A stretch of DNA of 64,000 nucleotides. Source: Bigelowiella natans CCMP2755. Lineage: Eukaryota; Protista; Cercozoa. Numbering within the stretch: position 1 is the first letter of the stretch; each line of letters starts with the position of its first letter. The notes beneath the pieces are model-generated. The model was not told the DNA's origin. It did no database searches and saw only the letters and a program-made list of their open reading frames with translations. Of the stretch, positions 26,744-54,918 are shown piece after piece. A program made the translations under genes and the position numbers. The stretch is from the NCBI GenBank assembly GCA_000320545.1, contig ADNK01001434.1, forward strand, positions 62,001 to 126,000. The letters are read 5' to 3'.

Positions 26744-27180
26744 TGAACCTGCAGGATGTAGCAAGTCCTGGTTGAATTCTACCGAATTCTATGGAGCGGA
26801 TAGAAGAAGCGTGGGGCAACCAGGGTGCGAGCAGCTGAGGTCTGGCTGAGCCCGTCGCCTTTCTGGATTCCGAATTTCGGTCGTAATGAGCAAGCGGCAG
26901 TTTTAACTTTGTCGCAGACATAAAATGGATGGGGTTCTCGATTTCTCATGTCGAACATAAGGCCGACGACCGCAAAAACACAGAGGTTTTCCCCCGGTGC
27001 GACGCGCATCATTTCGTTGTCGCAGGGAAGACTCAGATCGCGGCAGCGAATTTTCAGAGAAAGTGAGAAAGTGCATTCGGATGTCCGTGGATGTTGTTGT
27101 CGCACTCCCAAGATTCGGAGGAGGCGCCTCCGAGGAGGAGCAGGAGCCATTCCATTCGTACGTCCCCTCTGCCAGGTGCG

Positions 27181-27678
27181 ATGGAGGACAGCAGCAGCAG
27201 CAGCAGTGGGGTGAGATTCAACCGGGCTGAAGACGATTCACCCTGTATCGGACAGAAGCGCGCCAGGATCGCCCTTTTTAGGCCTGTCATCGTCGAGGCG
27301 CTGGCGTTTCTACGTCCTCTCGAGTACACACCCAATGAACCCTTCCCCTGACCTGATTCGCTAATCCTCGTTCCCAGAGCAATCAATGTGTTGCTACTCT
27401 CCATGTCGCGAACGTGTATGATGTACGCGATGATGATCGTTCACAGATTACTCAGCACGGAGTCAGTCTGCAAGTCCTGGAGGGCCATCCTCCGGGAGCA
27501 CGATCAGGTATGGAGAATTAGCTATGTGTCATGGTACCTAGGCGCTACAGACCACACACGTAGACGGCAGCAGTTGCGTGAGGACAGCACGGAAGGTCTT
27601 CTGGGTAGCCTTCTCACACGAGCACGAAAACGCTGGAGGGACCTTATCGTATGGGTAGTAGTAGTAGTACTGCTGCTG

Positions 27679-27726
<48 letters not shown>

Positions 27727-28067
27727 CCAATTACCGTACTTACACTGCTTCACACTTTGTCAGCCATCTTCTTGAATCAATCCCCCACATTGTCACTGCT
27801 TGTGTTGGTTTTGAGGATGTTATTCGCTTTTGCTGCAGAGGAGCATGGCGGAGGCTATGCGTTATAAACCGGGCGATCCGCGCGTGTGTCAGCGAGTGAA
27901 CATCACCAAAGAGTCTCTCACCAATGGCACCTTCACCGACGACACCACCGCAAATAGCAGCATGGCCAAAAAAATGTTTCTTCGCCGCCTCATGTTGCTC
28001 ACACGCGGCGATGATATCAAGAATGCTGCCGACGTCTTCGAGAATGTAAGTAAAACAGCCCATGGTA

Positions 28068-28108
<41 letters not shown>

Positions 28109-28918
28109 TGTTGTTGTTGTTGCAGTAGTAGTACCAGCACCAGCATCAGTAGCAATGGTAGTAAATCCGTAGTAGCAACCAAGTCTGCAGTAGAATCTCG
28201 CTCTCATTCCCTTCAATTATGATATTGTGTTGGTCGGATCCCGTGGTTCTTTGAATACGTGCAACGAAAATCGCACAGGACAACGATCGCCCGTAAGCTA
28301 CTATCCGAGCTCATTCATGCGTGTTGATGATATAGGGAACGAGTCTAGTTTTAAATTTCAGTTAGAATTTGCTTATTATAGAATCTTGTCGTCGTGCAAG
28401 TTATAGGTGATTGTGTATACAGCACAGCTGTCCGCAAGCCGTCAATATACTTTTTGTTGGTATCTGCTCGCAGATGTATGGCACACGGGGTTCGAAAACT
28501 ACAGCCGTTGCAGCATACTCACCGTCTCCTAGCCCATGCTAGAGAGCAAGCCCCTCAGCAGAATGACCATGATCGTTGCGTTGAAGAAAAGCGGCTCCGA
28601 AGAAGCTCCCAGATTGCCTACTTCGAGTGCTTGGTGGAAGAGGCATCGGTAGGGCTGGTATCAGAGTCGAGTGTATTTAACGCTCGTGACCACGTCGGAT
28701 GGAGAAGTGCTAGCGTTGGGTACCACAGCGATGACGGTAGTAGTAGTCATAGGAGCAGTAGTTGTAGTAAAAGTAGAAGAAGAAGAAGAAGAAGAAGAAG
28801 AAGAAATAAGTAGTAATAGCGTGAATAAATAGCGCTAGTAGTAATTACGTAACCCGGTTCTGTTCTGATCGTGTTAATACAATACTAAGCTTTAGTCGCG
28901 AAGATGAGAGCGATCGAC

Positions 28919-32146: not shown

Positions 32147-34828
32147 CACAACTACTGAGTACAGGCAAGGTAGAAATGACCAACTTTTTCGAATGCGGTT
32201 TCGTCAATCTTCTCCGTTTTCTGGAAAAGATGTTGGAGGGGCGGGATTTCGTATGCGATATCCGTCAAGGCCTTAAACTTTTTAGAAAATAAGTTATAAT
32301 CTGTTTCATCGTCCGTCTCCACAGATCGTTTCGCTGCTGTTTTTACTGCGAAGGCATAGCTGCCTTCGTCTTCCACCTTTTCCTCCCTTAAAAGAGCGTT
32401 AGCCCATTTTATCTTCTCCTCCATTTCCTTCTTCTGTGATGATGATCATGAAAATAGTAGGAAAAAGGGAAGGGTTACGAATGAGAAAGCACTGGCAGAC
32501 AGGGCACTAAATGAGTAATTTTGTAGAAGTAAATGAAAGTAGAATCTCTTCGGGGTGTTCTTTTTGTTTGGAGCTGATGGATGCTTGCTGGCTTACTTAC
32601 AGGAGAAAATGGTTTCCTGCCTTTTAGTGTTTGGTGCGACATAATTTTTCCGATATCAGCTCTCTCGGACGGGTCCCACGCAAGCATTTCATACAATAAG
32701 TCCATATCTTCCTCGAATTTATACACTTTTACATCCCAATTCCTATCTTCTTGCTTCGCCTCCTTCTGCAACTCTTCCACGTCCCTGGTAGCCAGCGAGA
32801 GAGAGAGGGAGGGGGAGAGGGGAAGAGGTTAGGCTCGCTCATTTTCTATGGTATTTAATGTCGTTGACGCTTACCCCATGCTGTAGCACGTCCTCGTGTT
32901 ATAGCGTCCAAGTGGATGCAAATGTAGCACCATTGGAAACCCCACAAATTGCTTCGATTTGAGGTAATCGTGAATGTGTTTCACTGAGAAGAAAATGAAG
33001 ACGAAGAATTACGATCCTAGCCGGTCTGCTATGGAGCCGCAATGTGAAAATGGTGATGATCACTAAGATGGCGAGAATGAAACGGTGATGACGGTTGGTG
33101 AGTAATGATGAGACATGCAGCAGTTTCTTCTTAATTGACTTACATGGGAATTGAGCTCGGTGTTTCACTCGATTTTTCCGAATCAACTGTTTGAAAACAG
33201 TATTCCAGAAAGACTTCTTATCCCCCTTCTTTAGATATTCCTGGAGACTATCCACGTCCTCGTGGCCGCGAAAGAGTTGGAACCGGTACTTCATTGCAAA
33301 AAAAAGGCACCCAGAGCTGAATATATCAACTTTGTAGTCGTAAGGTTTCCTGATTAATGATTGATGACGACAGCATATTCATCAGTAGACCATGAGGGGA
33401 ATGTAGTACTTCTAGCTCCTTTCTTGGTGTCATTATCGAACAGTTTCAATTAACTTCCTAAGACATCTACCAGGTCATTACGTTCGTCCATTCATAAAAG
33501 ATTGTATGGTGTGATCATCATTATTCGTCCCCGTCATCATCGTCATCATCATCATAATCTTTCATCAAACTGACGGGGAACACATTTTGCGAAGAACGGG
33601 TCCTTTGCCACCGTTTCCTTGACTTTCGCCGTGATTTTGGCCCCTGTGCACGCAACAACAACAACAATAATCACCACACACGCACACATGCACACACATG
33701 CATATACATTCGTCATTGTAAAGAAAGGAACAACAAGCTGACAGATATAATAGTTGCACTCTCTGTGCGTGGAGCCAGAGTTTGTGTACACAGCAAAGGC
33801 ATGACTTTGGTACTTTTGCTAATTCTCCTCCCCCTTGCACCCCCCTTCCTCTGATGATACATATCTTCAAGCAGCATTCAATGGTTAAAAGCTTGCTCTC
33901 GACTTACCTAATTTTTTTGTGTTCAATAACTTCGGGTGCCATATAGCCCGGGGTTCCCACATATCCTTCGGCCTTCTCTTCTTTAAACACGCAGCTCCCA
34001 AAATCTCCGACTTTCAGTATGAAATCCGCTCCAATCAAGGTATTGCTGAGCTTTATGTCCCTGTGGATAATCCCCTTTTTTTTCATAAATTTGAGTGCCT
34101 CCACAAGCTGTCGCCGGTACTCCTGGACTAGTTTTTCGCTTAATGTTGCGCACCTTAAGAAGTCGGAGAGATTGCCATGTTCGCAAACCTCAAGTGGGAG
34201 GTACACAGGTAAAGACTGTTTACCGTTCTTGTGAGTGAATATATATTCGCCGTGTCGTCGTCCGTTAATGATATATTGGCAGGGCTCGAGCTCGGATAAA
34301 GCTCTCCACTCTCTTTCAACATCCCTGCGAAAAAGAGAGTGGGCTTAGAACGATGCTGCCACACGTGTCTCGAGCACCGTTTATTTAATTTTAAAATTTA
34401 CTGAAATCGCAAATAAACTCGGAGCAGCATTGTGGTTGAAGAGTTATATCTCCCCTCCCCCCGCCCATCTCGTTACGGGCTGACTATCCTCACCGTTTTC
34501 TATTCCTGTTCCATTGGACTTTAAGAGCAACGTTAAATGTTCTGGAAATTTTATCATACATTAAAAACATCTTTCCATTTCTGTCGTTGTCAAAAGACCA
34601 ATTGAATCAACTTATCCACAACACACACCTGTTTTCTACTTTACACGTAGCCAAGTAAACTCGGCCAAAGCTGCCCTTCCCTAGATGTTGTTTGAGTTCG
34701 AAATTTCCCAATCTCCGTTTCATATTTTCAAAAGTCACGGCATTCTGAAACTCCTCTGGCTCCTCTTCCTCCATGTTTCCTTTAGCGTCCTCCGTTGTCT
34801 CTTCGTCTACTTCCATCTTATCGCTCAT
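31360..34828 (-). CDS. Ser/Thr protein kinase (CAMK/Polo-like catalytic domain) with C-terminal KA1-like domain
   Basis: LGKGSFGRV, VALK, HRDIKLSN, DFG, GTPGYMAPEV, YDYKVDIFSSG, MLAWDPSER. The tail IIEIRNLGNGNSDDFQKFYEALK resembles a KA1 terminal strand-helix. Confidence 0.92.
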
Positions 34829-35340: not shown

Positions 35341-35751
35341 TACCTACGGGTACCCCCCAACAAACCCAAATATTTAACCTGAAACTGAATCTAGACCACA
35401 ATTCTTCAAGAATCATAATAATAATTCACATGAACATGATCTTCTGTCGGTGCTCCTGGAAAACCGAGGGATTTGGTTGTCCAATTTTCGGGCAGAAAGA
35501 CCCGTGGTTTTAGCAGACTCCAAGTGACTTTATGTTGTCGCAACAAAGTATACGAGGAGGTATAGCCGTTTGATGGAAGGTTCTGGGAACGTAGTAAAGT
35601 TTTGGGAAAATTCTTGCAACGACATTCTGTTGCCCGGTGCTCGGTTTTAACACTGTCATCGCAGACTGAGATTAGCCATCAGAGGTTCCCTCCCCCTCTA
35701 CACAAGTATTAATGGATTTTGAACTTCTGGTTTATTTTTTTATGCGGTCAG

Positions 35752-36689
35752 ATGGGAGACAAAGAAGAAGGTCAAGTTGCACGCAGGCAAGCGAACGGAG
35801 GAGGCGAGTTCTTATATCGTGTGGTTGAGGTAGATCAGTCGACTACAGAAGTACTCTGCTCCTTGTATTACACAATCATGCTCATACGATATTTTACTAG
35901 CAAATGCAGGAGAGGAGTAATGCGTTCTAAAACCAGTGAAAGGATCACTATGTGATTCGATTGTGTTAACTTCGTGGCTCTTCCTTAGTATGCTCAATCC
36001 TGGAATGACCGCGCTGCACTGCCATCCGTCTGTAAGAGCTGGTACGCTTGGCTCAATTCTGGAGCCAAAGGTAGGAAGCATGAGGGCTATTCATAAGTGC
36101 AGAACGGGGGAAAGGGGGGAAGGAGAACGACTGACGGATAGTAGCGCTCGACGGCCCAAATACCTGCCTTTCGCATGCACATGCATCTATTATGTTGTGA
36201 TAGTCATCATTTTCGTGTTGAGAGGGTGTAGTCCTATCATCTAAAATGTGCTTCATTATTTGGGTTGATTCAGATGGAAAGATGTGGCGCGTTCTTTGCG
36301 GATGCTTGGAACGTGAGGGTTGGGCGTCCATCGAGCACTTCGCCCATAAAGGAGGGAAGCACGATCTGAAATTCAATTTCCTTAAACTGTTTCACATGCG
36401 CAATATGATCGAGGTGGGTAAATGGAGTAAACGCGTTTTCTTGTATGTTTACGTCTACAAAGGAATACCACTGTCGTCATGCTTGACGTAGAGTAGAAAA
36501 GGACGATGTAGTTGTAAGCACAGGCACAGCGTGTATGGTACAGTGCGTGATAGAAGTCATTTTTGTCCCACTCCCCTCCACTATAATTCTTCCCTCAGAG
36601 AAAAGGCGACAGCAAGTTCTCTATGCATGTCGCTGTTCGATTCCGCCCTGAACGGAAAGTGAAGGTGGGAGCTGGATCACTACTAACAT

Positions 36690-36723
<34 letters not shown>

Positions 36724-39087
36724 ATACACTCACACACACATGGAGTTGAAAGATACCAAATGCGATGCTTTCTCTCTCACAGGATGACGGAAAACACTCG
36801 TCGTTGGCAAGTGGAGCTGTCATAATCCCACTGTAAGTAAACGTGAGCCAGCAGATTTAACAAAGAACTGTTGTCTCAGCACAGATATTCATCATTTATC
36901 GAAGTTGCTTCGAGTCATCATGCATGGAACGCATAGACATGTGTCATATTTTGACAACAGTAAAAAGAATGACAATCATGAAATTCATTCTCCGTCGGAA
37001 CTTTCAGCATCTGCTAACGAGCTGACGTTTTCCTTTGTCGGTCTTCTTTTCCTTTGTCGGTCTTCTTTTGCGTCGTCGTTACGAACAACAAGGCATCAGC
37101 GACTGCAGATGTTGAAGGCAACGACACGCAATAAGTCGGAGCTTAACGCCAAGATGAAGCGACAATTAGGAGGAACAGGAAGGAAGAAGAAAGGCAAAAA
37201 AAAAAAATAGCAATAGTTAGTAAACAAAAAGAGATAGATATCGCCACCCGGAACAGTAACATATTAAATATCTGTCACGGTTCATCAGTAACATTAGTTA
37301 TTTTGCCCCTTCCCCCCCCCTTCCGTTCTTCCCCTTTCCACTCTCTCTTTCCCCTCCCCCCCCCTCTGTGATCCATTTCATCATTCCTGGACATCAAAAG
37401 ACACGATCGTTGTGCTCCATAAGAAGGACAATCACCACAATAACAACAACAACAAAACAAACCCAGAATCAACAGCCGCCGTCCACTGTGATGATAGTGG
37501 TGGCGCTAAAAGCAGCAGTAGTAGCAGCAGTAGCGGTGATGCTCAACCTCAACTTCGTCGTCGTGAGGAGGACGTCTCCAACTCCGAGGATGATGGTAAA
37601 AACCCCGGTGATCATAAGGATAACGTCCATGCGCGGACGCACGCGATGGCGCGCGTTGTATCCATCGACCCAAGTGCTAAGCAGGTACTAGAAGAAGAAG
37701 AAGTAGTAGTAGTCGGAGTAGTAGTAGCTGCGTAGAAAAGAAGTCCATAGGACACAATAGCGACGGGGATGGGTTATGATAGAGATAATAATGATAAATA
37801 TAAATGGGGGAAAAAAAAATTAATGATAATAGTGATGCTAGTAATGGTGGCGGTTTTGGCAGGTCGTGATGCTCGCCAAAGGCGTGGGATTGCGCGGATT
37901 TGATTACGACTGTGTGATGAACGAGGAGACGAGTCAGGTAAAGGACAGACAGCAAGGGGGGGGTCACAATTTCCTTGGAACTAACACGCCAGCTCTCTAC
38001 TACCGGACGTCATGATTACGATAATAGTATTGATGATATGTGGTGAGGGATGGTAACTGCTATCCAATAATATATATACACATATATTACCGATGCTGTT
38101 CGTTTTCGACATCAGGCTGCAGCATATTCCAAATGCGCTGGGAGTCTTGTGAGCGACTTTCTCAACGGTGTTACTAGTAACCTCTCATCAACCTTTGGCT
38201 TTATTTTCCAGCGACGCGGCATTTCTAGTGTCTGTCATTATAGTCTTGCACTTCTTCTTCATCATCGTGATCCAAATCATAACCGCGCACTCTCAGGGTT
38301 CAATGCTGCGCTATTCGTATACGGACAGACAGGCACGTGCCTTCTCAATTGTCTCGATAAATTGACACAGCACACAACGCACTACACTTTTTATTCATGC
38401 ACATAGAAGCAACCGTGAAAACTATTGAGAATTCACGTATCAGTGATAATGACGTCGTCTTTCCCCCACATTCGCACCTCGCTAACGCATGCGTCTTATC
38501 CCCTCCCTCCAACCCCCCCCTTTTTTTTTAAAACCACATAGGTTCTGGAAAGACGCATACGATGTTTGGTCCTGAAAGAAGTGGCGAGGACGATGGCTCC
38601 GACGGAGAAACGGTACATCCATAGCACTTACACATAAGGCCAAGCTTATCGACTACCAGCGTTCGATGAATATATGCCTCCCCCACCTCACTGCTACTCT
38701 CCTACTCTTGCTGGCGGCTGGGGGTGTGCTGTTTTGCATTGTTGCTTGTATGGTGGTTGCGTAGAATGGGGTCGTCCATCGAGCATGTGAGCATATCATG
38801 GCAAAGATCCACCAGAGAAATAAGTACGGTTGCCAGGCCAAGGTAGAAGTAGTAGAATAGTGGTAGTCGATATTGGTTAATGCCTGTGCTGCCCATGTCG
38901 CTGCTGCAGCTAAGTTGCTTCCACGCCAACGAAATCTGAAGGAAGTAGTTCTTGCGCGGCCTCGTGTATAAATGAGGACACCGATGATGATCTTGGCTGT
39001 TGTTGTGAACCGCGCTATTACGCCGATGGGCCATCTCATTCCCTATCTGACACTTGCACACAATTGGTGATACGTAACACCTCGCAT

Positions 39088-39123
<36 letters not shown>

Positions 39124-39772
39124 GTGCATAGGTTGGAATATCGTACGTGGAAGTATACGGCGAGGAGGTCACCAACTTGCTCAAAAGCGGTAGCAGCAGC
39201 AGCAGCAGCAGCAGTAGTAGCACGGCGTGTTGTGACAGACCTATTCGTAGCCTGCAGCAGAGCAGAAAAGAAGCGAATAGCAAGCAGCGAGGAGGCAACT
39301 ATGTGGGCGATGGTCAATCGAAAATAAGTTGATTTCACCAGAAACAACAACTAATCTTAGGCGAGCTGGTTTCGAGGAACAAAGCGGCGGCGCGCGAGTA
39401 TGTGATGAAGGTGCGATCCTCCTTCACAATCACAACAGCACAGTGAAGTCGATGCATGATAAGCCGCGCCTGTGATTGGTCCTTCTCGCCTGTTCGGAAG
39501 ATCTCTAAATAAGCAGCTCAAGATACGTGGGGATCGTCCTCGTCACCATTGCAACCATCCTGCTGCGTTTCGATACGATATAATCGGCGAATTGAGAGCC
39601 TCATTCCTTCATTCTTTCTCAATGTATTCTCCGTTCAGGGCCAAGCAGAGGCGAAAGTGGAAGATCTTCACCACCTGCACAAGCTTCTGCGCGAAGGGTG
39701 AATGAATCGCGTTTTTTGGCTGAAATTAAGAATCATAAGTGCAGTGAGTATGACCGCCATCAGTAAATGGGA

Positions 39773-39811
<39 letters not shown>

Positions 39812-40023
39812 ATAACGATGATGATGACGATGATGCTCGAAACAACTGTCGAAGTACTGTCATATTGAAAACAAATGAAGATGTCGTGGACGGCAAAGGA
39901 TTAAGCATATCTCATTCTCACGGTTGATGATCGTGTCAGGGAGGTACAGAAGCGTCGTGCTGCAACTGCAATGAACGAGAGTAAGTGTAGCAATGCGCCT
40001 CTCGTTTCAACTTTGTTTTCTCA

Positions 40024-40061
<38 letters not shown>

Positions 40062-40492
40062 CTAGGGTCCTCCCGAGCGCATACTCTGCTGATTTTCAGG
40101 CTACAGCAGGTAATATATGGTGCATTGTGTATTTGGAGTGAAATTGCAAATTCAGCACCTCTACACTCAGACAGGAAGGGCATGATTTAGAAGAACATAC
40201 TACTTAGATTTCAATCATATATCCAATGGTTGCCGTGATAGCCTTTTTGAGTTATTTCTCTTTCCAATCTCTCCTTCTCCGATTCTTTCTACTCCTCCTA
40301 TTCCCCCCCCCCCCTCTTCACCTGAAAGCTGCACCCAAAGACCAAAATGACGCTAGAGAGTCGTCTGATATTAGCGGATCTTGGGGGTGCGGAACAGGTG
40401 TGATCTGATGGCTAAAACTCAGCTGCTGTGGCACTAGGAGGAGGGGGGGAGAGAGGGGTGGGGAGAGAAGGAGGCGGATAAGGAGGGGTGGA

Positions 40493-40551
<59 letters not shown>

Positions 40552-40930
40552 GGGAGAGAGAGAGAGAGTGTGTGTGTTTGTGTACTACAACTATTAGGAT
40601 CCCCTGAGATGTAATGCCATGCACAGATCAAAGAGAGTAAAGTTTCTGGTGAGCGGCTGAAGGAGGCAGGTGTGATTAGATGGGATAGAAGAGAGAGAAG
40701 AAGAACAAGAAGACTTTATGAGAAAATCTATTGTTGTAGAAGTCGTGGTCGATGAATTGTTGTTCAATCTCCTAAACGGCACTCCCCCCCCCATACACAT
40801 ACACACGCATGCACACATACATACAGAGAGATCTAGAGAAAGAGAGAGCGATAGAGAATAAATTCTTCTTCCTGCAGCTACATCATCCATAAATATACTC
40901 ACTCACACACATACACATATATAATATGAA

Positions 40931-40977
<47 letters not shown>

Positions 40978-41254
40978 AATTTATATTTTACATATGTACA
41001 TGTGTGTGTGTGTGTATAATTTTTAGTATTTATCAATCTTGGCTTGCTGGCTCTTAAGCAGTGTATCGATGCATTGCAGAGAAGAGAGGTGAGTCGAGGC
41101 GATCGTCGCTTTTCAAACAATCTAAAAGTAGCGATAATGATGATAATGATGATTAATCAATGATGTGGATGACTTGACTGGAATGCTGCTTTGGGCGGTA
41201 ATTTAGAATCATAATATCAAAAGCCGTCGATTGTTAGCTGCCGATGTGTGCGCG

Positions 41255-41294
<40 letters not shown>

Positions 41295-41331
41295 TTCTCG
41301 CCCCCTCTCTCTTCCATATACAGAGACATAC

Positions 41332-41363
<32 letters not shown>

Positions 41364-41704
41364 GCAGACTTACGTGCCATTTGGTGACTCGCAGCTGACG
41401 AAGCTTCTGAGTAATACTTATTAAGTAAGAATTAGAAAACAAAGAGGGTCTCTCAGGACGAGTTGGTCAATATTCTTGTGGTGAAAATATATAGATGAAT
41501 GTCTATAGCTCACCAGCTAAATGTTCGCTTCTCGGCGGCATGCATACCACATGCTTGCACACATTTGTATGTGCATTTTTTGTGTGTGTGTATGTGTGTG
41601 TGTATGTGTGTAAGAGAGAGAGAGAGAGAGAGAAGGAAAGAGCCCATATTTATACATAACATATCTTATTAGGTGCATCTCTTGGGGGAAACAGTAAATC
41701 TGGT

Positions 41705-41743
<39 letters not shown>

Positions 41744-42412
41744 TTAATATTGTTTGTGTCTCAACCCTCCCTGCATTTCTTTTTACTTGCCCAAATATGT
41801 AATCATATGCACATACTTCAACACATAACTCATTACCTCTTATATATACTGAGAATGATGTTTGGCATGATATTATGACACCTTATAAGGAGTGATTATA
41901 TGCGCGAGCAAAGCGCCTGTCGACTCGACGATGACAATGGAAGCTTTGAGATTTGGCGAGAGGTAGGCAGTCCCTCTCCCAGTCATCATTGCGGACTATA
42001 GAGCAAATTCCTCCATCATCAACAATACTCTTTAGCGAGTAGAGACATTTGCATGTTTGTGGGTCAAATATTTGTCCGGGGAGTTGTTCGCGAAGGTCTA
42101 TACCTTTGCTAAGGACTGCAGGCTGCGACTTTCATTGTTATCATATTATCATATTAATGAATGCTGTTGATAATATGGGCGACGGTTGTGTCGTCACTGA
42201 AGGTCTTGGTCATTATTATTGTAGGAAGCAATTTATGATTTCAGACGACCGAGTGTTGCTCATTCTTCTCTCTGTTCATTTTCCCTCCTCTTCCTCTCTC
42301 TCTCTCTCCCCCCCCCCCTTATTCAGTTGTCGACAAATCGAAAGTAGTGCCTCACAGGCCAAGGGAATTGCGTTGAGGTGTGTTAATGGATGTTTATGCG
42401 TGTGTATGTGTC

Positions 42413-50662: not shown

Positions 50663-52389
50663 ATGCTGGGCATAACTCTTGTTATCCTTGGGGCCCTTTG
50701 CACACCGCAAGGGGTTCTGTCCAAAGATCAAGGAAATGCTGCTGTCCATGTCCCTAACAAGCTCGAGCAAGAACCGTTGTGGATCGACTACGAAGATGAA
50801 AATGATGACTCCAAGCCAGAACTGTCGCGGATCGGCCACGAAGATGAGAATGATGAATCCAAGCTAGAACGGATCAGCGAAAGAACGAAGGCATTCGCTG
50901 GCGTACTTTCCGCAAAAAGTCACAGCCACAATCCCCACGGCCACAATCCCCACAGCCACAATCCCCACAGCCACTCCCCTCATGGCCACAGTCCCCACTC
51001 CCACTTCCCTCATGGCCACAGTCCCCACTCCCACAATCCTCATAGTCACAATCCTCATGGCCACAGTCCCCACTCCCACAATCCTCATAGCCACAATCCT
51101 CATAGTCACAATCCCCACTCCCACAATCCTCATAGCCACAGGTACTAGCAGTTGTCGAAGTGTAGCTTGATAGAATTTCTGCGTTTATTTAACCCGCAGT
51201 CACATTTCATTTATTTGTATTTTCGAAGATTGTCCATGCAATGGAGGTGTTTTATCAATGTGCTTTCATTACAGAGACTTAAATTCAAAAAACTTTGACA
51301 ACAAAAATCATCCGTACTCTCTTTCCTGTTTTACTATGATACGCGCTCCCTCCTCCGCGTTCGATGTCTTCTTGAAATATTAAATGTTTGATTGTCAATA
51401 TTTCCGTCAGCCCGCACGTTCATACCCCCGTACCTACAAAGTTCCCCACACCGGCACCGACTCCGTTCCCTACACCGGCACCGACTAAATACCCCACACC
51501 GGCACCGACTCCGTTCCCTACACCGGCACCGACTAAATACCCTACACCGGCACCGACTCCGTTCCCTACACCGGCACCGACTAAATACCCCACACCGGCA
51601 CCGACTCCGTTCCCTACACCGGCACCGACTAAATACCCTACACCGGCACCGACCCCAAATCCAACGCCTTTCCCGACACCACTGCCGACACCCGAGCCCT
51701 CGCAGAGCCCTACCCATGTGCCTACGACACAGTCTCCAGGGACATCAAGCCCTCGCACTATGAGCCCGACGTCGCTGGCTCCTACGTCGATATCTCCAGG
51801 GACTGAGTCCCCGAGCTCGTGCGCACCGAGCTCGTGCTCACCGAGCTCGGTCAGCCCGACCCCAAATCCAACGCCTTTCCCGACACCACTGCCGACACCC
51901 GAGCCCTCGCAGAGCCCTACCCATGTGCCTACGACACAGTCTCCAGGGACATCAAGCCCTCGCACTATGAGCCCGACGTCGCTGGCTCCTACGTCGATAT
52001 CTCCAGGGACTGAGTCCCCGAGCTCGTGCGCACCGAGCTCGTGCTCACCGAGCTCGGTCAGCCCCGCAACCCGCTCACCTTTGGCGGCAGGGAAGACGTT
52101 TGGTCCAACAGAGGTGCCGACATGCTCACCTGTGACGAACTCCCCGACGTCCCTGCAGCCAACCTCTAGCGCTCCTTCCACCTGTGCGCCCACATCTCGG
52201 TCTCCGTCGAGTGCTACACCTGCAACGATTAGTCCTTCGACCTCTGCACCGCTTACGGGAGGCCTGACTCACCACCCTGTCACCAGCATGCCCTCATTAT
52301 CACCAATCACAGCAGCGCCATCTACGGTATGCATCCTTGATTTCAGTGTGATTGTGAAGAAACTGTGTGCTTAAGAGAGGAAGTTTACG

Positions 52390-52427
<38 letters not shown>

Positions 52428-54918
52428 GTGGTCGACATGCACTCCTCCTTCGTGGTGCCCTCCATGTAGTGAATTTACTGCCCCCATTTGCTTGTTAAGC
52501 ATAGATTCGTTATCATTTCTTATCTGGAGTCGCTGCCAAAAAAGATACCTTTATTCCGTAATCATTGAATTAGGTCTGCCCGACAACGGGCTCACCGTCA
52601 TCTGCTAGCCCAAACACCTTTACCCCAAGCACTTCCGCGCCAATAACCACAACACCAGTTACTGTGGTCCCCTCTGCAAGTCCCTCAACTTCTCCATCCG
52701 CCACTCCATCAACGTCCTCTCCATTAACGCTACACCCTGTGTCATCGCATCCCCTCACTGCGAACCCGACAATTGCTCCTAGCTCGCTCAGCCCTTCCAC
52801 AAATGGTCCCGTAACTTGCGTTCCAATAACGAAGGCACCCAGCTCACTCACTCCGTCGACAAGTAGCCCCGGGACTCACGCTCCAACGACGTCGGCACCT
52901 AGCTCACTCAGCCCCTCCACGAGGAATCCTACGACCGATGCACCGACAACCTTAGCGCCTGTGACCGAAGCACCGACGCGGAGTCCTCTTACGGCGGTTC
53001 CAAGCTCATCGCCAACTACGACCTGCCCAAGCCAGGGTGTCGTTCCTTCCTTCGATCCAGAGGTCTGGATGTACACTCGAGATGATGATAGAAAATCGGG
53101 GCTCGGCGACAGAAATATGTGGAAGGGGGGGGGGGGAGGAGAGGGGGGCATTGACTTATGTTTGCTCTGCTAATCAAGTGCATTTGTGTTTCGCAACAAG
53201 TCTTGAGTACTCTGCTTCATCCACTTGAGAAGTCCTCCCCTTAATTCCCCATTCACTTTTATTTTCCCTTGGTCCTTCCCGCCCTTCAGGTCTCTGCTCC
53301 TGTAATCCCGTGGGCCTCGACTGCAACCTTCGATAGTGCTCTGACGATTGTGAACGTGATTTTTACGGCTGCGACAAATGAACCCGAATGCACATCGCTA
53401 CTTACTACGGAGTTGATCAGAAAACTTGGCAAAGAATACAAGTGCCTGTGGGTGCGCTCGACGCAGCTAGACCTGATCACGGGCACAAATCCCACGATAC
53501 TTCCGGAGGAAATCTTACACATCAGGGCTGGAGTGCTGGGCGATCCAACGTTTAGAGCTGTGGCAACTGCTCATCATGTATCGGTGTCAGCGCCCAAAAA
53601 TCCTCTTCCTGTCTCCCTTTCGCTCACCGGCCCCACTCTAATTGGAAGGTGTGTGCTGGCGGTGTAGCAGTATAGGAAGGTGGTGGTAGAGGATGGCCAT
53701 GGTGGTGATGGTGGTGGTGATGGTGGTGGTGATGGTAGTGAAGCGGTGAGTGTTGTAGGTTATTCATGTTTCAATGTTAACTGTGCAATCATTTGACTTG
53801 ACTTGCTTTCTGTCCTGTTGGTGCTATCATCGTCGTGATTCCGGTGGGGTTAAACATCACAGATGCGACCCTGTTATGCTTCGCACAACCGTGACTGGTG
53901 CTGGTGGCCGAGCTGTAACACATTCTTGGACGTACGAAGGGGACAATAGTGCGCAGGATACTGCCGCCATGAACGCCGTGCTCAAGCGAGGATCTACAAG
54001 CTCCGTGATGAGCTTTGTAAGCGGAAACTTCACAGACGGAACACATACCTTCCGCTTGAATGTCAGCAATTTCATCGGAGTTTCTGGAAACGCTGTCCTG
54101 ATCTTTGTTAAGAATTCCGAGGTCGAGCCACCCAAAGTTGCCCTTTCTGCAGGTGGGCTAGGAATCTTTGTGCATGCACGCGCTGTCAAATATACTGAAC
54201 ACAGAGTTGCTTCTCATCGCCATTCTGACTCCTCTCACTTTCAGGGTCCCTGATCGAAGCTTCCACAGACTCACAAGTGGTCCTGCGCAGTCAAACAGAG
54301 CCACCGCTCGAGTGCGCAGGTTTTGTCGGCTCGACGAGATTCTATGTCACTCGTGCAGTTTGGACACCAATCACGAGCCAAACTGTAAATGTAAATGGCG
54401 AGACCATAAAACTAGCAGCCCACAGGGCTGCGACAGTGTCGAAGGTGTGGAGTGGAAACTCGATGCTGCTGAATTCTGGTGATCTATCACCCAATGAGCT
54501 GCCTTATGGATTCCAGCTGCACGTCACCACACTTGATTTTAGGTACGACTTGTCATCACACTTAGCATCAATCTGCTTGCCGTTCGTTGTTTTCACGATA
54601 TGCTCTCTCGGTCAGATCGACTATCCCGCGTTTGGTGGGAGAGACAAAGCTTACGCAGCTGGTCAAGATGTACCCGGGCACTATTAGCACTCAGCTCTCC
54701 GGCGGCGCTTCGAGGCAGATCCCGGTGACATCCAGTGTATCACGCTCATTCATCATCACTGCATCGCCCAAATATGACCCAGCAGATGCATCGCATGCTT
54801 TGGCGTTTGCCTGGACTCTAACTGATGCCGTCTCCGGAGTGCCAGTAGTTATCCCGACCTCAGACATCCTGGGGAATCAGCTCACCCTGAGCACCGATCT
54901 CCTCGTTGCGAACAAGGT

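Follow-up and report, generated by a model that had tools for sequence, protein, structure and literature searches.

Can a kinesin motor carry, on its own polypeptide chain, an F-box, the part by which a protein usually docks onto a ubiquitin ligase? This question is raised by a stretch of 64,000 nucleotides from the intron-rich alga Bigelowiella natans (the window, to whose first letter all positions refer unless stated otherwise), in which an earlier note had read three short exons as an F-box running in frame into a kinesin. We find that a single real, expressed and heavily spliced gene carries both an F-box-like motif and a kinesin motor, and that the fusion is real. The best explanation of the locus, to which we give a probability of roughly 0.55, is an expressed protein with an F-box-like head and a divergent kinesin motor, the head putatively tethering an SCF core to microtubules. 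The protein combines two known domains in a new way, and full-text literature searches turned up no report of an F-box–kinesin fusion.

Gene structure and expression

The first three coding exons, which the earlier note had assembled, are joined exactly as it proposed by spliced transcript contigs from runs X3, X4 and X1, drawn from three studies (Table 1). The joints 35829|35989, 36070|36274 and 36413|36599 are each GT..AG after the shift stated by the tool, and the codon split at 36070/36274 reads GAT, encoding D. Beyond them the frame does run on to the kinesin strand FSMHVAVRFRP, which lies in exon 4. The contigs of X3, X4 and X1 are tagged 'RNA?', yet the introns are absent from them. Public reads of four runs were mapped on 35500–41499, the interval that the splice map covers.

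Twenty further small exons continue the reading frame after the first three. The resulting model, built from contig joints, side lengths, loose ends and splice sites, comprises 23 coding exons of 30–284 nt each, totaling 1685 nt with zero in-frame stops. This is the exact span from the ATG to the end of a 1738-nt contig of X4; hence a single assembled transcript carries everything from the leader through the F-box-like exons to the end of the motor. The 469 nt between 38844 and 41412 also agree with the contig. All 22 coding introns are GT/GC..AG, and two of them (38168–38296 and 39981–40065) were deduced from contig coordinates, being missing from the joint table. The second of these, 85 nt long, is a (CA)n repeat with a GTAAGT donor and an AG acceptor that is stop-free in frame, so that reading through it produces a spurious 'THTHTH' exon that masks switch I.

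No long open frame exists in the region, where stop-free pieces reach at most 145 residues and the exons on the + strand are short, which bears out the earlier remark that the architecture cannot be seen in the open reading frame track. A 23-exon gene of this kind shows that much of the domain architecture of this intron-rich genome is not visible in open reading frames. RNA maps the gene up to 41962, and it extends past this point; Pfam returned no domain for ten open stretches on the + strand between 42.3 and 47 kb.

The protein starts M-G-D-K..., with the ATG at 35752 as the first base of its exon. A leader intron of 67 nt (35685–35751, GT..AG) puts the leader exon straight onto this ATG, and the leader carries in-frame stops before it, so the open frame begins at 35752. 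The leader joint is also present in one raw read of the stranded RNA-Seq run X22, whose reads nearly all share one orientation, in keeping with + strand RNA.

Several minor features of the transcript and its introns were recorded alongside. Within the spliced 5' leader (35400–35684), short open frames begin at several upstream ATGs, one of them at 35431; the main frame may thus be under translational control, or transcription may in fact start further downstream than the contig implies. GC..AG borders are used by two of the 22 coding introns (37194–37400 and 38333–38541), both backed by spliced contigs, and (CA)n/(GT)n microsatellites fill several introns (39981–40065, 36682–36741 and 40480–40600). 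Run X1 holds 0.58 of the sampled words and also contains unspliced pieces over confirmed introns (38112–38333 and others), which could be intron retention, pre-mRNA or DNA in the run.

Table 1. Exons of the F-box-like kinesin gene, in window positions, with encoded residues, content and the basis of each assignment (HMM, kinesin HMM unless stated otherwise).
Feature	Position	Strand	Residues	Content	Basis
5' leader exon	35500–35684	+		upstream ATGs	joint 35682->35750 (+2) in X3 and X4 contigs and one raw X22 read; X3 contig reaches at least about 170 nt further upstream
Exon 1	35752–35829	+	1–26	start codon; end EFLYRVVE fits F-box helix 1	
Exon 2	35989–36070	+	27–53 and first base of 54	F-box-like core, helices 2–3, SVCKSWY	
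Exon 3	36274–36413	+	54–100	KMWRVLC closes F-box-like motif, then ~40-residue linker	
Exon 4	36599–36664	+	101–122	kinesin beta1 FSMHVAVRFRP	joints on both sides; HMM 94–100
Exons 5–7	36783–36832, 37093–37193, 37401–37684	+	123–267	~145-residue low-complexity insertion; end is motor strand VVSIDPSAKQ	contig joints, splice sites, phases; GC donor after 37193
Exons 8, 9a, 9b	37863–37937, 38116–38167, 38297–38332	+	268–322	strands to first P-loop half FVYGQTG	HMM 138–180 in order; 55/35-letter sides; GC donor after 38332
Exon 10	38542–38612	+	322–345	second P-loop half SGKTHTMFG	joints 38332|38542 and 38612|38765; HMM 182–191; also matches kinesin paralogues
Exons 11–14	38765–38842, 39132–39189, 39361–39410, 39639–39697	+	346–427	alpha2 to loop 8 region	joints, loose ends, HMM order; exon 12 is Pfam Kinesin 126–144, 13.4 bits
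Exons 15a, 15b	39940–39980, 40066–40109	+	427–455	switch I NERSSRAH	summed lengths equal contig
Exons 16, 17	40329–40397, 40627–40669	+	456–493	switch II LADLGGAEQ and loop 11	joints 40109|40329 and 40397|40627; HMM 313–342
Exons 18, 19	41027–41088, 41368–41410	+	493–528	alpha4 LLALKQCIDAL, loop 12 YVPFGDSQLT	X3 depth, loose end 41412; Pfam Kinesin 255–272; HMM 345–377
Exons 20, 21	41673–41702, 41890–41962	+	528–561	LGGNSKS, motor end ALRFGE	HMM 380–407; 101-letter loose end of X4 contig equals 28+73 nt

The F-box-like N-terminus

The F-box-like three-helix motif occupies approximately residues 16–62, at the very N-terminus, and is followed by a linker of ~45 residues and then the motor. F-box profile searches were run exon by exon, and each score is that of a single exon rather than of the spliced N-terminus. 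Exon 2 alone (27 residues) matched PF18511, F-box_5, over positions 15–34 of 42 with an E-value of 5e-4 (p about 2e-8 per comparison) and 20.0 bits against a curated cut-off of 25.5. With PF00646, which the earlier note had named as a check, the same exon gave a match at E 0.088 and 13.2 bits, under the cut-off of 20.5. No F-box profile match rose above its curated cut-off in these exon-wise searches, and Pfam returned no family besides F-box ones for exon 2. A six-frame scan of the 91-Mb genome with PF18511 produced exactly one match, exon 2 itself (E 0.065). A language-model search with exon 2 listed F-box clusters for all of its ten best hits at a score of 0.81, which we take as a lead only; a PDB search with this exon alone gave no match.

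We also built an HMM from 21 F-boxes of the same genome and searched it with filters off. The best local matches fall at positions 11–14 for exon 1, 21–40 for exon 2 and 41–47 for exon 3; they are colinear and abut the exon junctions. Anchored at the junctions and scored without gaps, the end of exon 1 reaches 8.9 bits (positions 9–16) and the start of exon 3 reaches 12.1 bits (41–47), values attained by shuffled exons in 0.0007 and 0.0026 of trials and by random window peptides in 0.007 and 0.002, respectively. With the 10.7 bits of exon 2, the three pieces add up to about 32 bits with no gap costs deducted, near the top of what the 21 genuine F-boxes score when each is left out in turn (median 21.8 bits, range 7.8–32.9). 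On this small HMM exon 2 alone is not outstanding within the window, where a chance segment scores 11.5 bits.

At the level of residues, EFLYRVVE, SVCKSWY and KMWRVL align with positive scores to HMM positions 9–16, 28–34 and 41–46. The hydrophobic pattern of helix 1, the V-C/S-K-x-W core and the closing L/M-W are all present. Helix 1 lacks its canonical initial Leu-Pro and has Gly-Gly at the aligned positions; the Pro is likewise absent from about half of the genome's own F-boxes in the HMM alignment. The layout recalls canonical F-box proteins such as Skp2 and TIR1/COI1, in which an N-terminal motif of ~45 residues with the same helix 1 pattern, VCKxW and closing Trp is followed by a further domain. 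The TIR1-type model F-box_5 is the best Pfam model for exon 2, and plant TIR1/COI1 is the source of that family; COI1 also does without Leu-Pro, a parallel that serves as a lead only. Canonical F-box proteins differ from the present one in that an LRR, WD40 or Kelch domain lies downstream, whereas here a kinesin motor does and the Leu-Pro is lacking.

The earlier reading of the N-terminus as a match to the F-box pattern thus survives in part: the likeness comes piecewise, in order and abutting the junctions, but passes no curated cut-off and lacks the Leu-Pro. We regard true homology to the F-box as very probable. The 60 N-terminal residues might instead be an unrelated helical leader that merely resembles an F-box. 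Such a coincidence would fit a site chosen by eye for its F-box likeness, pieces none of which is above a curated cut-off, and a window segment that equals exon 2 on the own-genome HMM; yet three independent pieces match consecutive sections of the profile at the exon junctions, the combined chance is about 0.065 across the genome for exon 2 multiplied by about 1e-5 for the flanks, and the Pfam and language-model matches are all F-box families. We judge chance likeness very improbable.

Descent from an F-box leaves room for a head that has lost Skp1 binding and is now a helical cap, a regulatory or dimerizing piece, or a segment with no role. This is the main rival to a Skp1-binding head, and one we hold to be rather doubtful. 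Gly-Gly in place of Leu-Pro and the sub-threshold F-box scores speak for it, as does the lack of detectable orthologues or paralogues that could show constraint. Weighing against such a relic, helix 1 retains its hydrophobic pattern, the VCKSW core and closing Trp are likewise in place, the missing Pro is shared with about half of the genome's F-boxes as described above, and several studies show the gene expressed with correct splicing.

Exon 3 had no match in Pfam, and the linker it encodes belongs to no known family. Searched against 1.84 billion protein representatives, exon 3 found 0 matches, its own gene product included; against its own genome it found itself and two chance matches (E 0.2–0.3), with no paralogue.

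The kinesin motor and its relatives

The motor spans residues ~105–561 and beyond, and its catalytic motifs are complete. Beta1 (FSMHVAVRFRP) covers residues 107–117, and the P-loop GQTG|SGKTHTM, which conforms to GQTxxGKT/S, is split over the RNA-confirmed junction 38332|38542. The loop 8 region contributes VSYVEVYGEEV in exon 12, switch I, a form of NxxSSRSH, lies at residues about 439–446 across exons 15a and 15b, and switch II (DLGGAE) at residues about 472–477 in exon 16. Compared with DLAGSE, switch II retains the D, the second G and the E and shows Ala-to-Gly and Ser-to-Ala variants. Loop 12 departs from the microtubule-binding motif H-I/V-P-Y/F-R-D/E-S-K-L-T: Gly replaces the conserved Arg, and Gln the Lys. 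A low-complexity insertion of ~145 residues follows beta1, and the motor has no canonical neck linker.

We searched the exons against a kinesin HMM made from five uninterrupted paralogue motors of the same genome. Sixteen of the 17 motor exons match it in strictly increasing, abutting order over positions 94–407, and tblastn with kinesin paralogues gives the same exon order. The Pfam Kinesin matches per exon are faint and far under the cut-off, as expected because the pieces are only ~20 residues long. Together with the P-loop and both switches, this colinearity upholds the claim that a kinesin motor follows the N-terminus: the motor is complete but divergent, as judged from its sequence. The genome holds at least 60 kinesin loci, none of them a close paralogue.

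Among known families, the motor was compared with kinesin-13 (KIF2/MCAK). Alpha4 reads LLALKQCIDAL here against LLALKECIRAL in kinesin-13, and exons 10 and 18 have a kinesin-13-like paralogue among their best matches. The motor differs from kinesin-13 in that KQC replaces KEC and that no KVD stretch stands between beta1 and the P-loop; since this loop 2 KVD finger is absent, we assign the motor to no family despite the likeness of alpha4. A family call from exon-wise sums against 45 own-genome loci was discarded, as the sums of 248–289 bits are mostly noise and none stands out. Single-exon PDB searches gave no match for exons 10 and 16 and, for exon 18, KIF2A as the sole match at a non-significant E of 1.6; a lysostaphin match for exon 21 was rejected as spurious. 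The insertion in exon 7 (37401–37684) is rich in Asn, Ser and Asp, and its stretch DDSGGAKSSSS resembles a DSG-type phosphodegron.

Proposed function and neighbouring loci

The genome encodes Skp1 at four loci and several cullins, so the partners of an F-box protein exist. We propose that the F-box-like head would bind Skp1 and that the motor would thereby carry or anchor a Skp1-Cul1 ligase core on microtubules, microtubule binding by the motor being assumed. Skp1 binding is the hinge of this model, and we put it at slightly better than even odds. As the motor occupies the position usually held by a substrate-binding domain, it would present tubulin or microtubule-bound proteins to the ligase, or just place the ligase on the lattice. 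A role as substrate receptor for microtubule-bound targets is a tentative suggestion that we hold at less than even odds. A 'motorised' SCF, in which the motor replaces the substrate-binding domain and Skp1-Cul1-Rbx1 is walked along or parked on microtubules to ubiquitinate tubulin or lattice-bound proteins, is a possibility we rate slightly lower still. If true, it would be a direct physical coupling of a cytoskeletal track to protein turnover, of which literature searches found no description for any organism.

To our knowledge, SCF ligases and kinesins meet only in trans, with F-box proteins marking kinesins for destruction. SCF-Fbxw5 is reported to act on kinesin-13 in trans (PMC8441365), SCF-beta-TrCP to control STARD9 via an insertion in its motor domain (PMC4310736) and FBXB-65 to act on UNC-104 (bioRxiv 10.1101/2023.08.13.553108). 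These cases share with the present gene a functional link between SCF-type ubiquitination and kinesin motors, and the present motor, like that of STARD9, has an insertion, which here is large and Ser/Asp-rich. In the Fbxw5, beta-TrCP and FBXB-65 cases the F-box protein and the kinesin are separate polypeptides, whereas here they form one chain.

As with other F-box proteins, the fusion protein would itself be exposed to ubiquitination, with a correspondingly limited lifetime. Carried further, a Skp1-bound F-box might mainly drive SCF ubiquitination and turnover of the kinesin itself, for example timed to the cell cycle, with no other substrates. Autoubiquitination within SCF commonly makes F-box proteins unstable, which lends this idea some weight, as does the Ser/Asp-rich insertion with its DSG-like stretch. 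Kinesin levels are also reported to be under SCF control in trans in animals (PMC8441365; PMC4310736). Against it, the tail beyond 41962 could hold a substrate-binding part, though Pfam found no domain there, and we consider turnover of the motor as the main function unlikely. The tethering of an SCF core to microtubules is our preferred reading. A single chain of F-box protein and motor would reveal a new means of bringing ubiquitination to the microtubule lattice or, alternatively, of fitting a motor with its own timer; the N-terminal ~100 residues together with Skp1 would make a simple testable construct.

Elsewhere in the same genome, no other F-box match lies within 45 kb of a kinesin match. 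An apparent second F-box–kinesin on the neighbouring contigs C837/C838 proved to be a gene with a U-box and an F-box-like motif next to an unrelated kinesin fragment. That gene (L014:95–655, G000:C837, + strand) encodes in one frame a U-box (PF04564, E 4e-11) followed directly by half an F-box-like motif (PF12937, E 1.4e-4), namely its first half; the product would unite two different ubiquitin-ligase modules in one protein.

Within the window, a second F-box gene lies 8 kb upstream of the kinesin gene (27091–28813, + strand), its motif split by an intron between FLRPLE and LLSTESVCKSWRAIL. One of its exons matches PF12937 (E 0.011) and a later open stretch weakly matches SPRY (E 0.065), which suggests an Fbxo45-like F-box/SPRY design. 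The position of the motif intron differs between this gene and the kinesin gene. An origin of exon 2 by copying from the F-box gene at 27.4 kb was rejected, as introns interrupt the two motifs at different places and DNA similarity is confined to the VCKSW codons.

Between the two lies a multi-exon protein kinase gene (32152–34828, - strand), with GKGSFGRVY, HRDIK and DFG in open stretches. Its start codon, at 34828, faces away from the kinesin gene; the leader of the latter begins only a few hundred bases to the right, and the two genes may share a bidirectional promoter. Further downstream, 51388–53173 (+ strand) consists of long open stretches with Pro/Thr/Ser-rich tandem repeats, given as 16-letter units, that look like a gene for a mucin-like or cell-surface protein.
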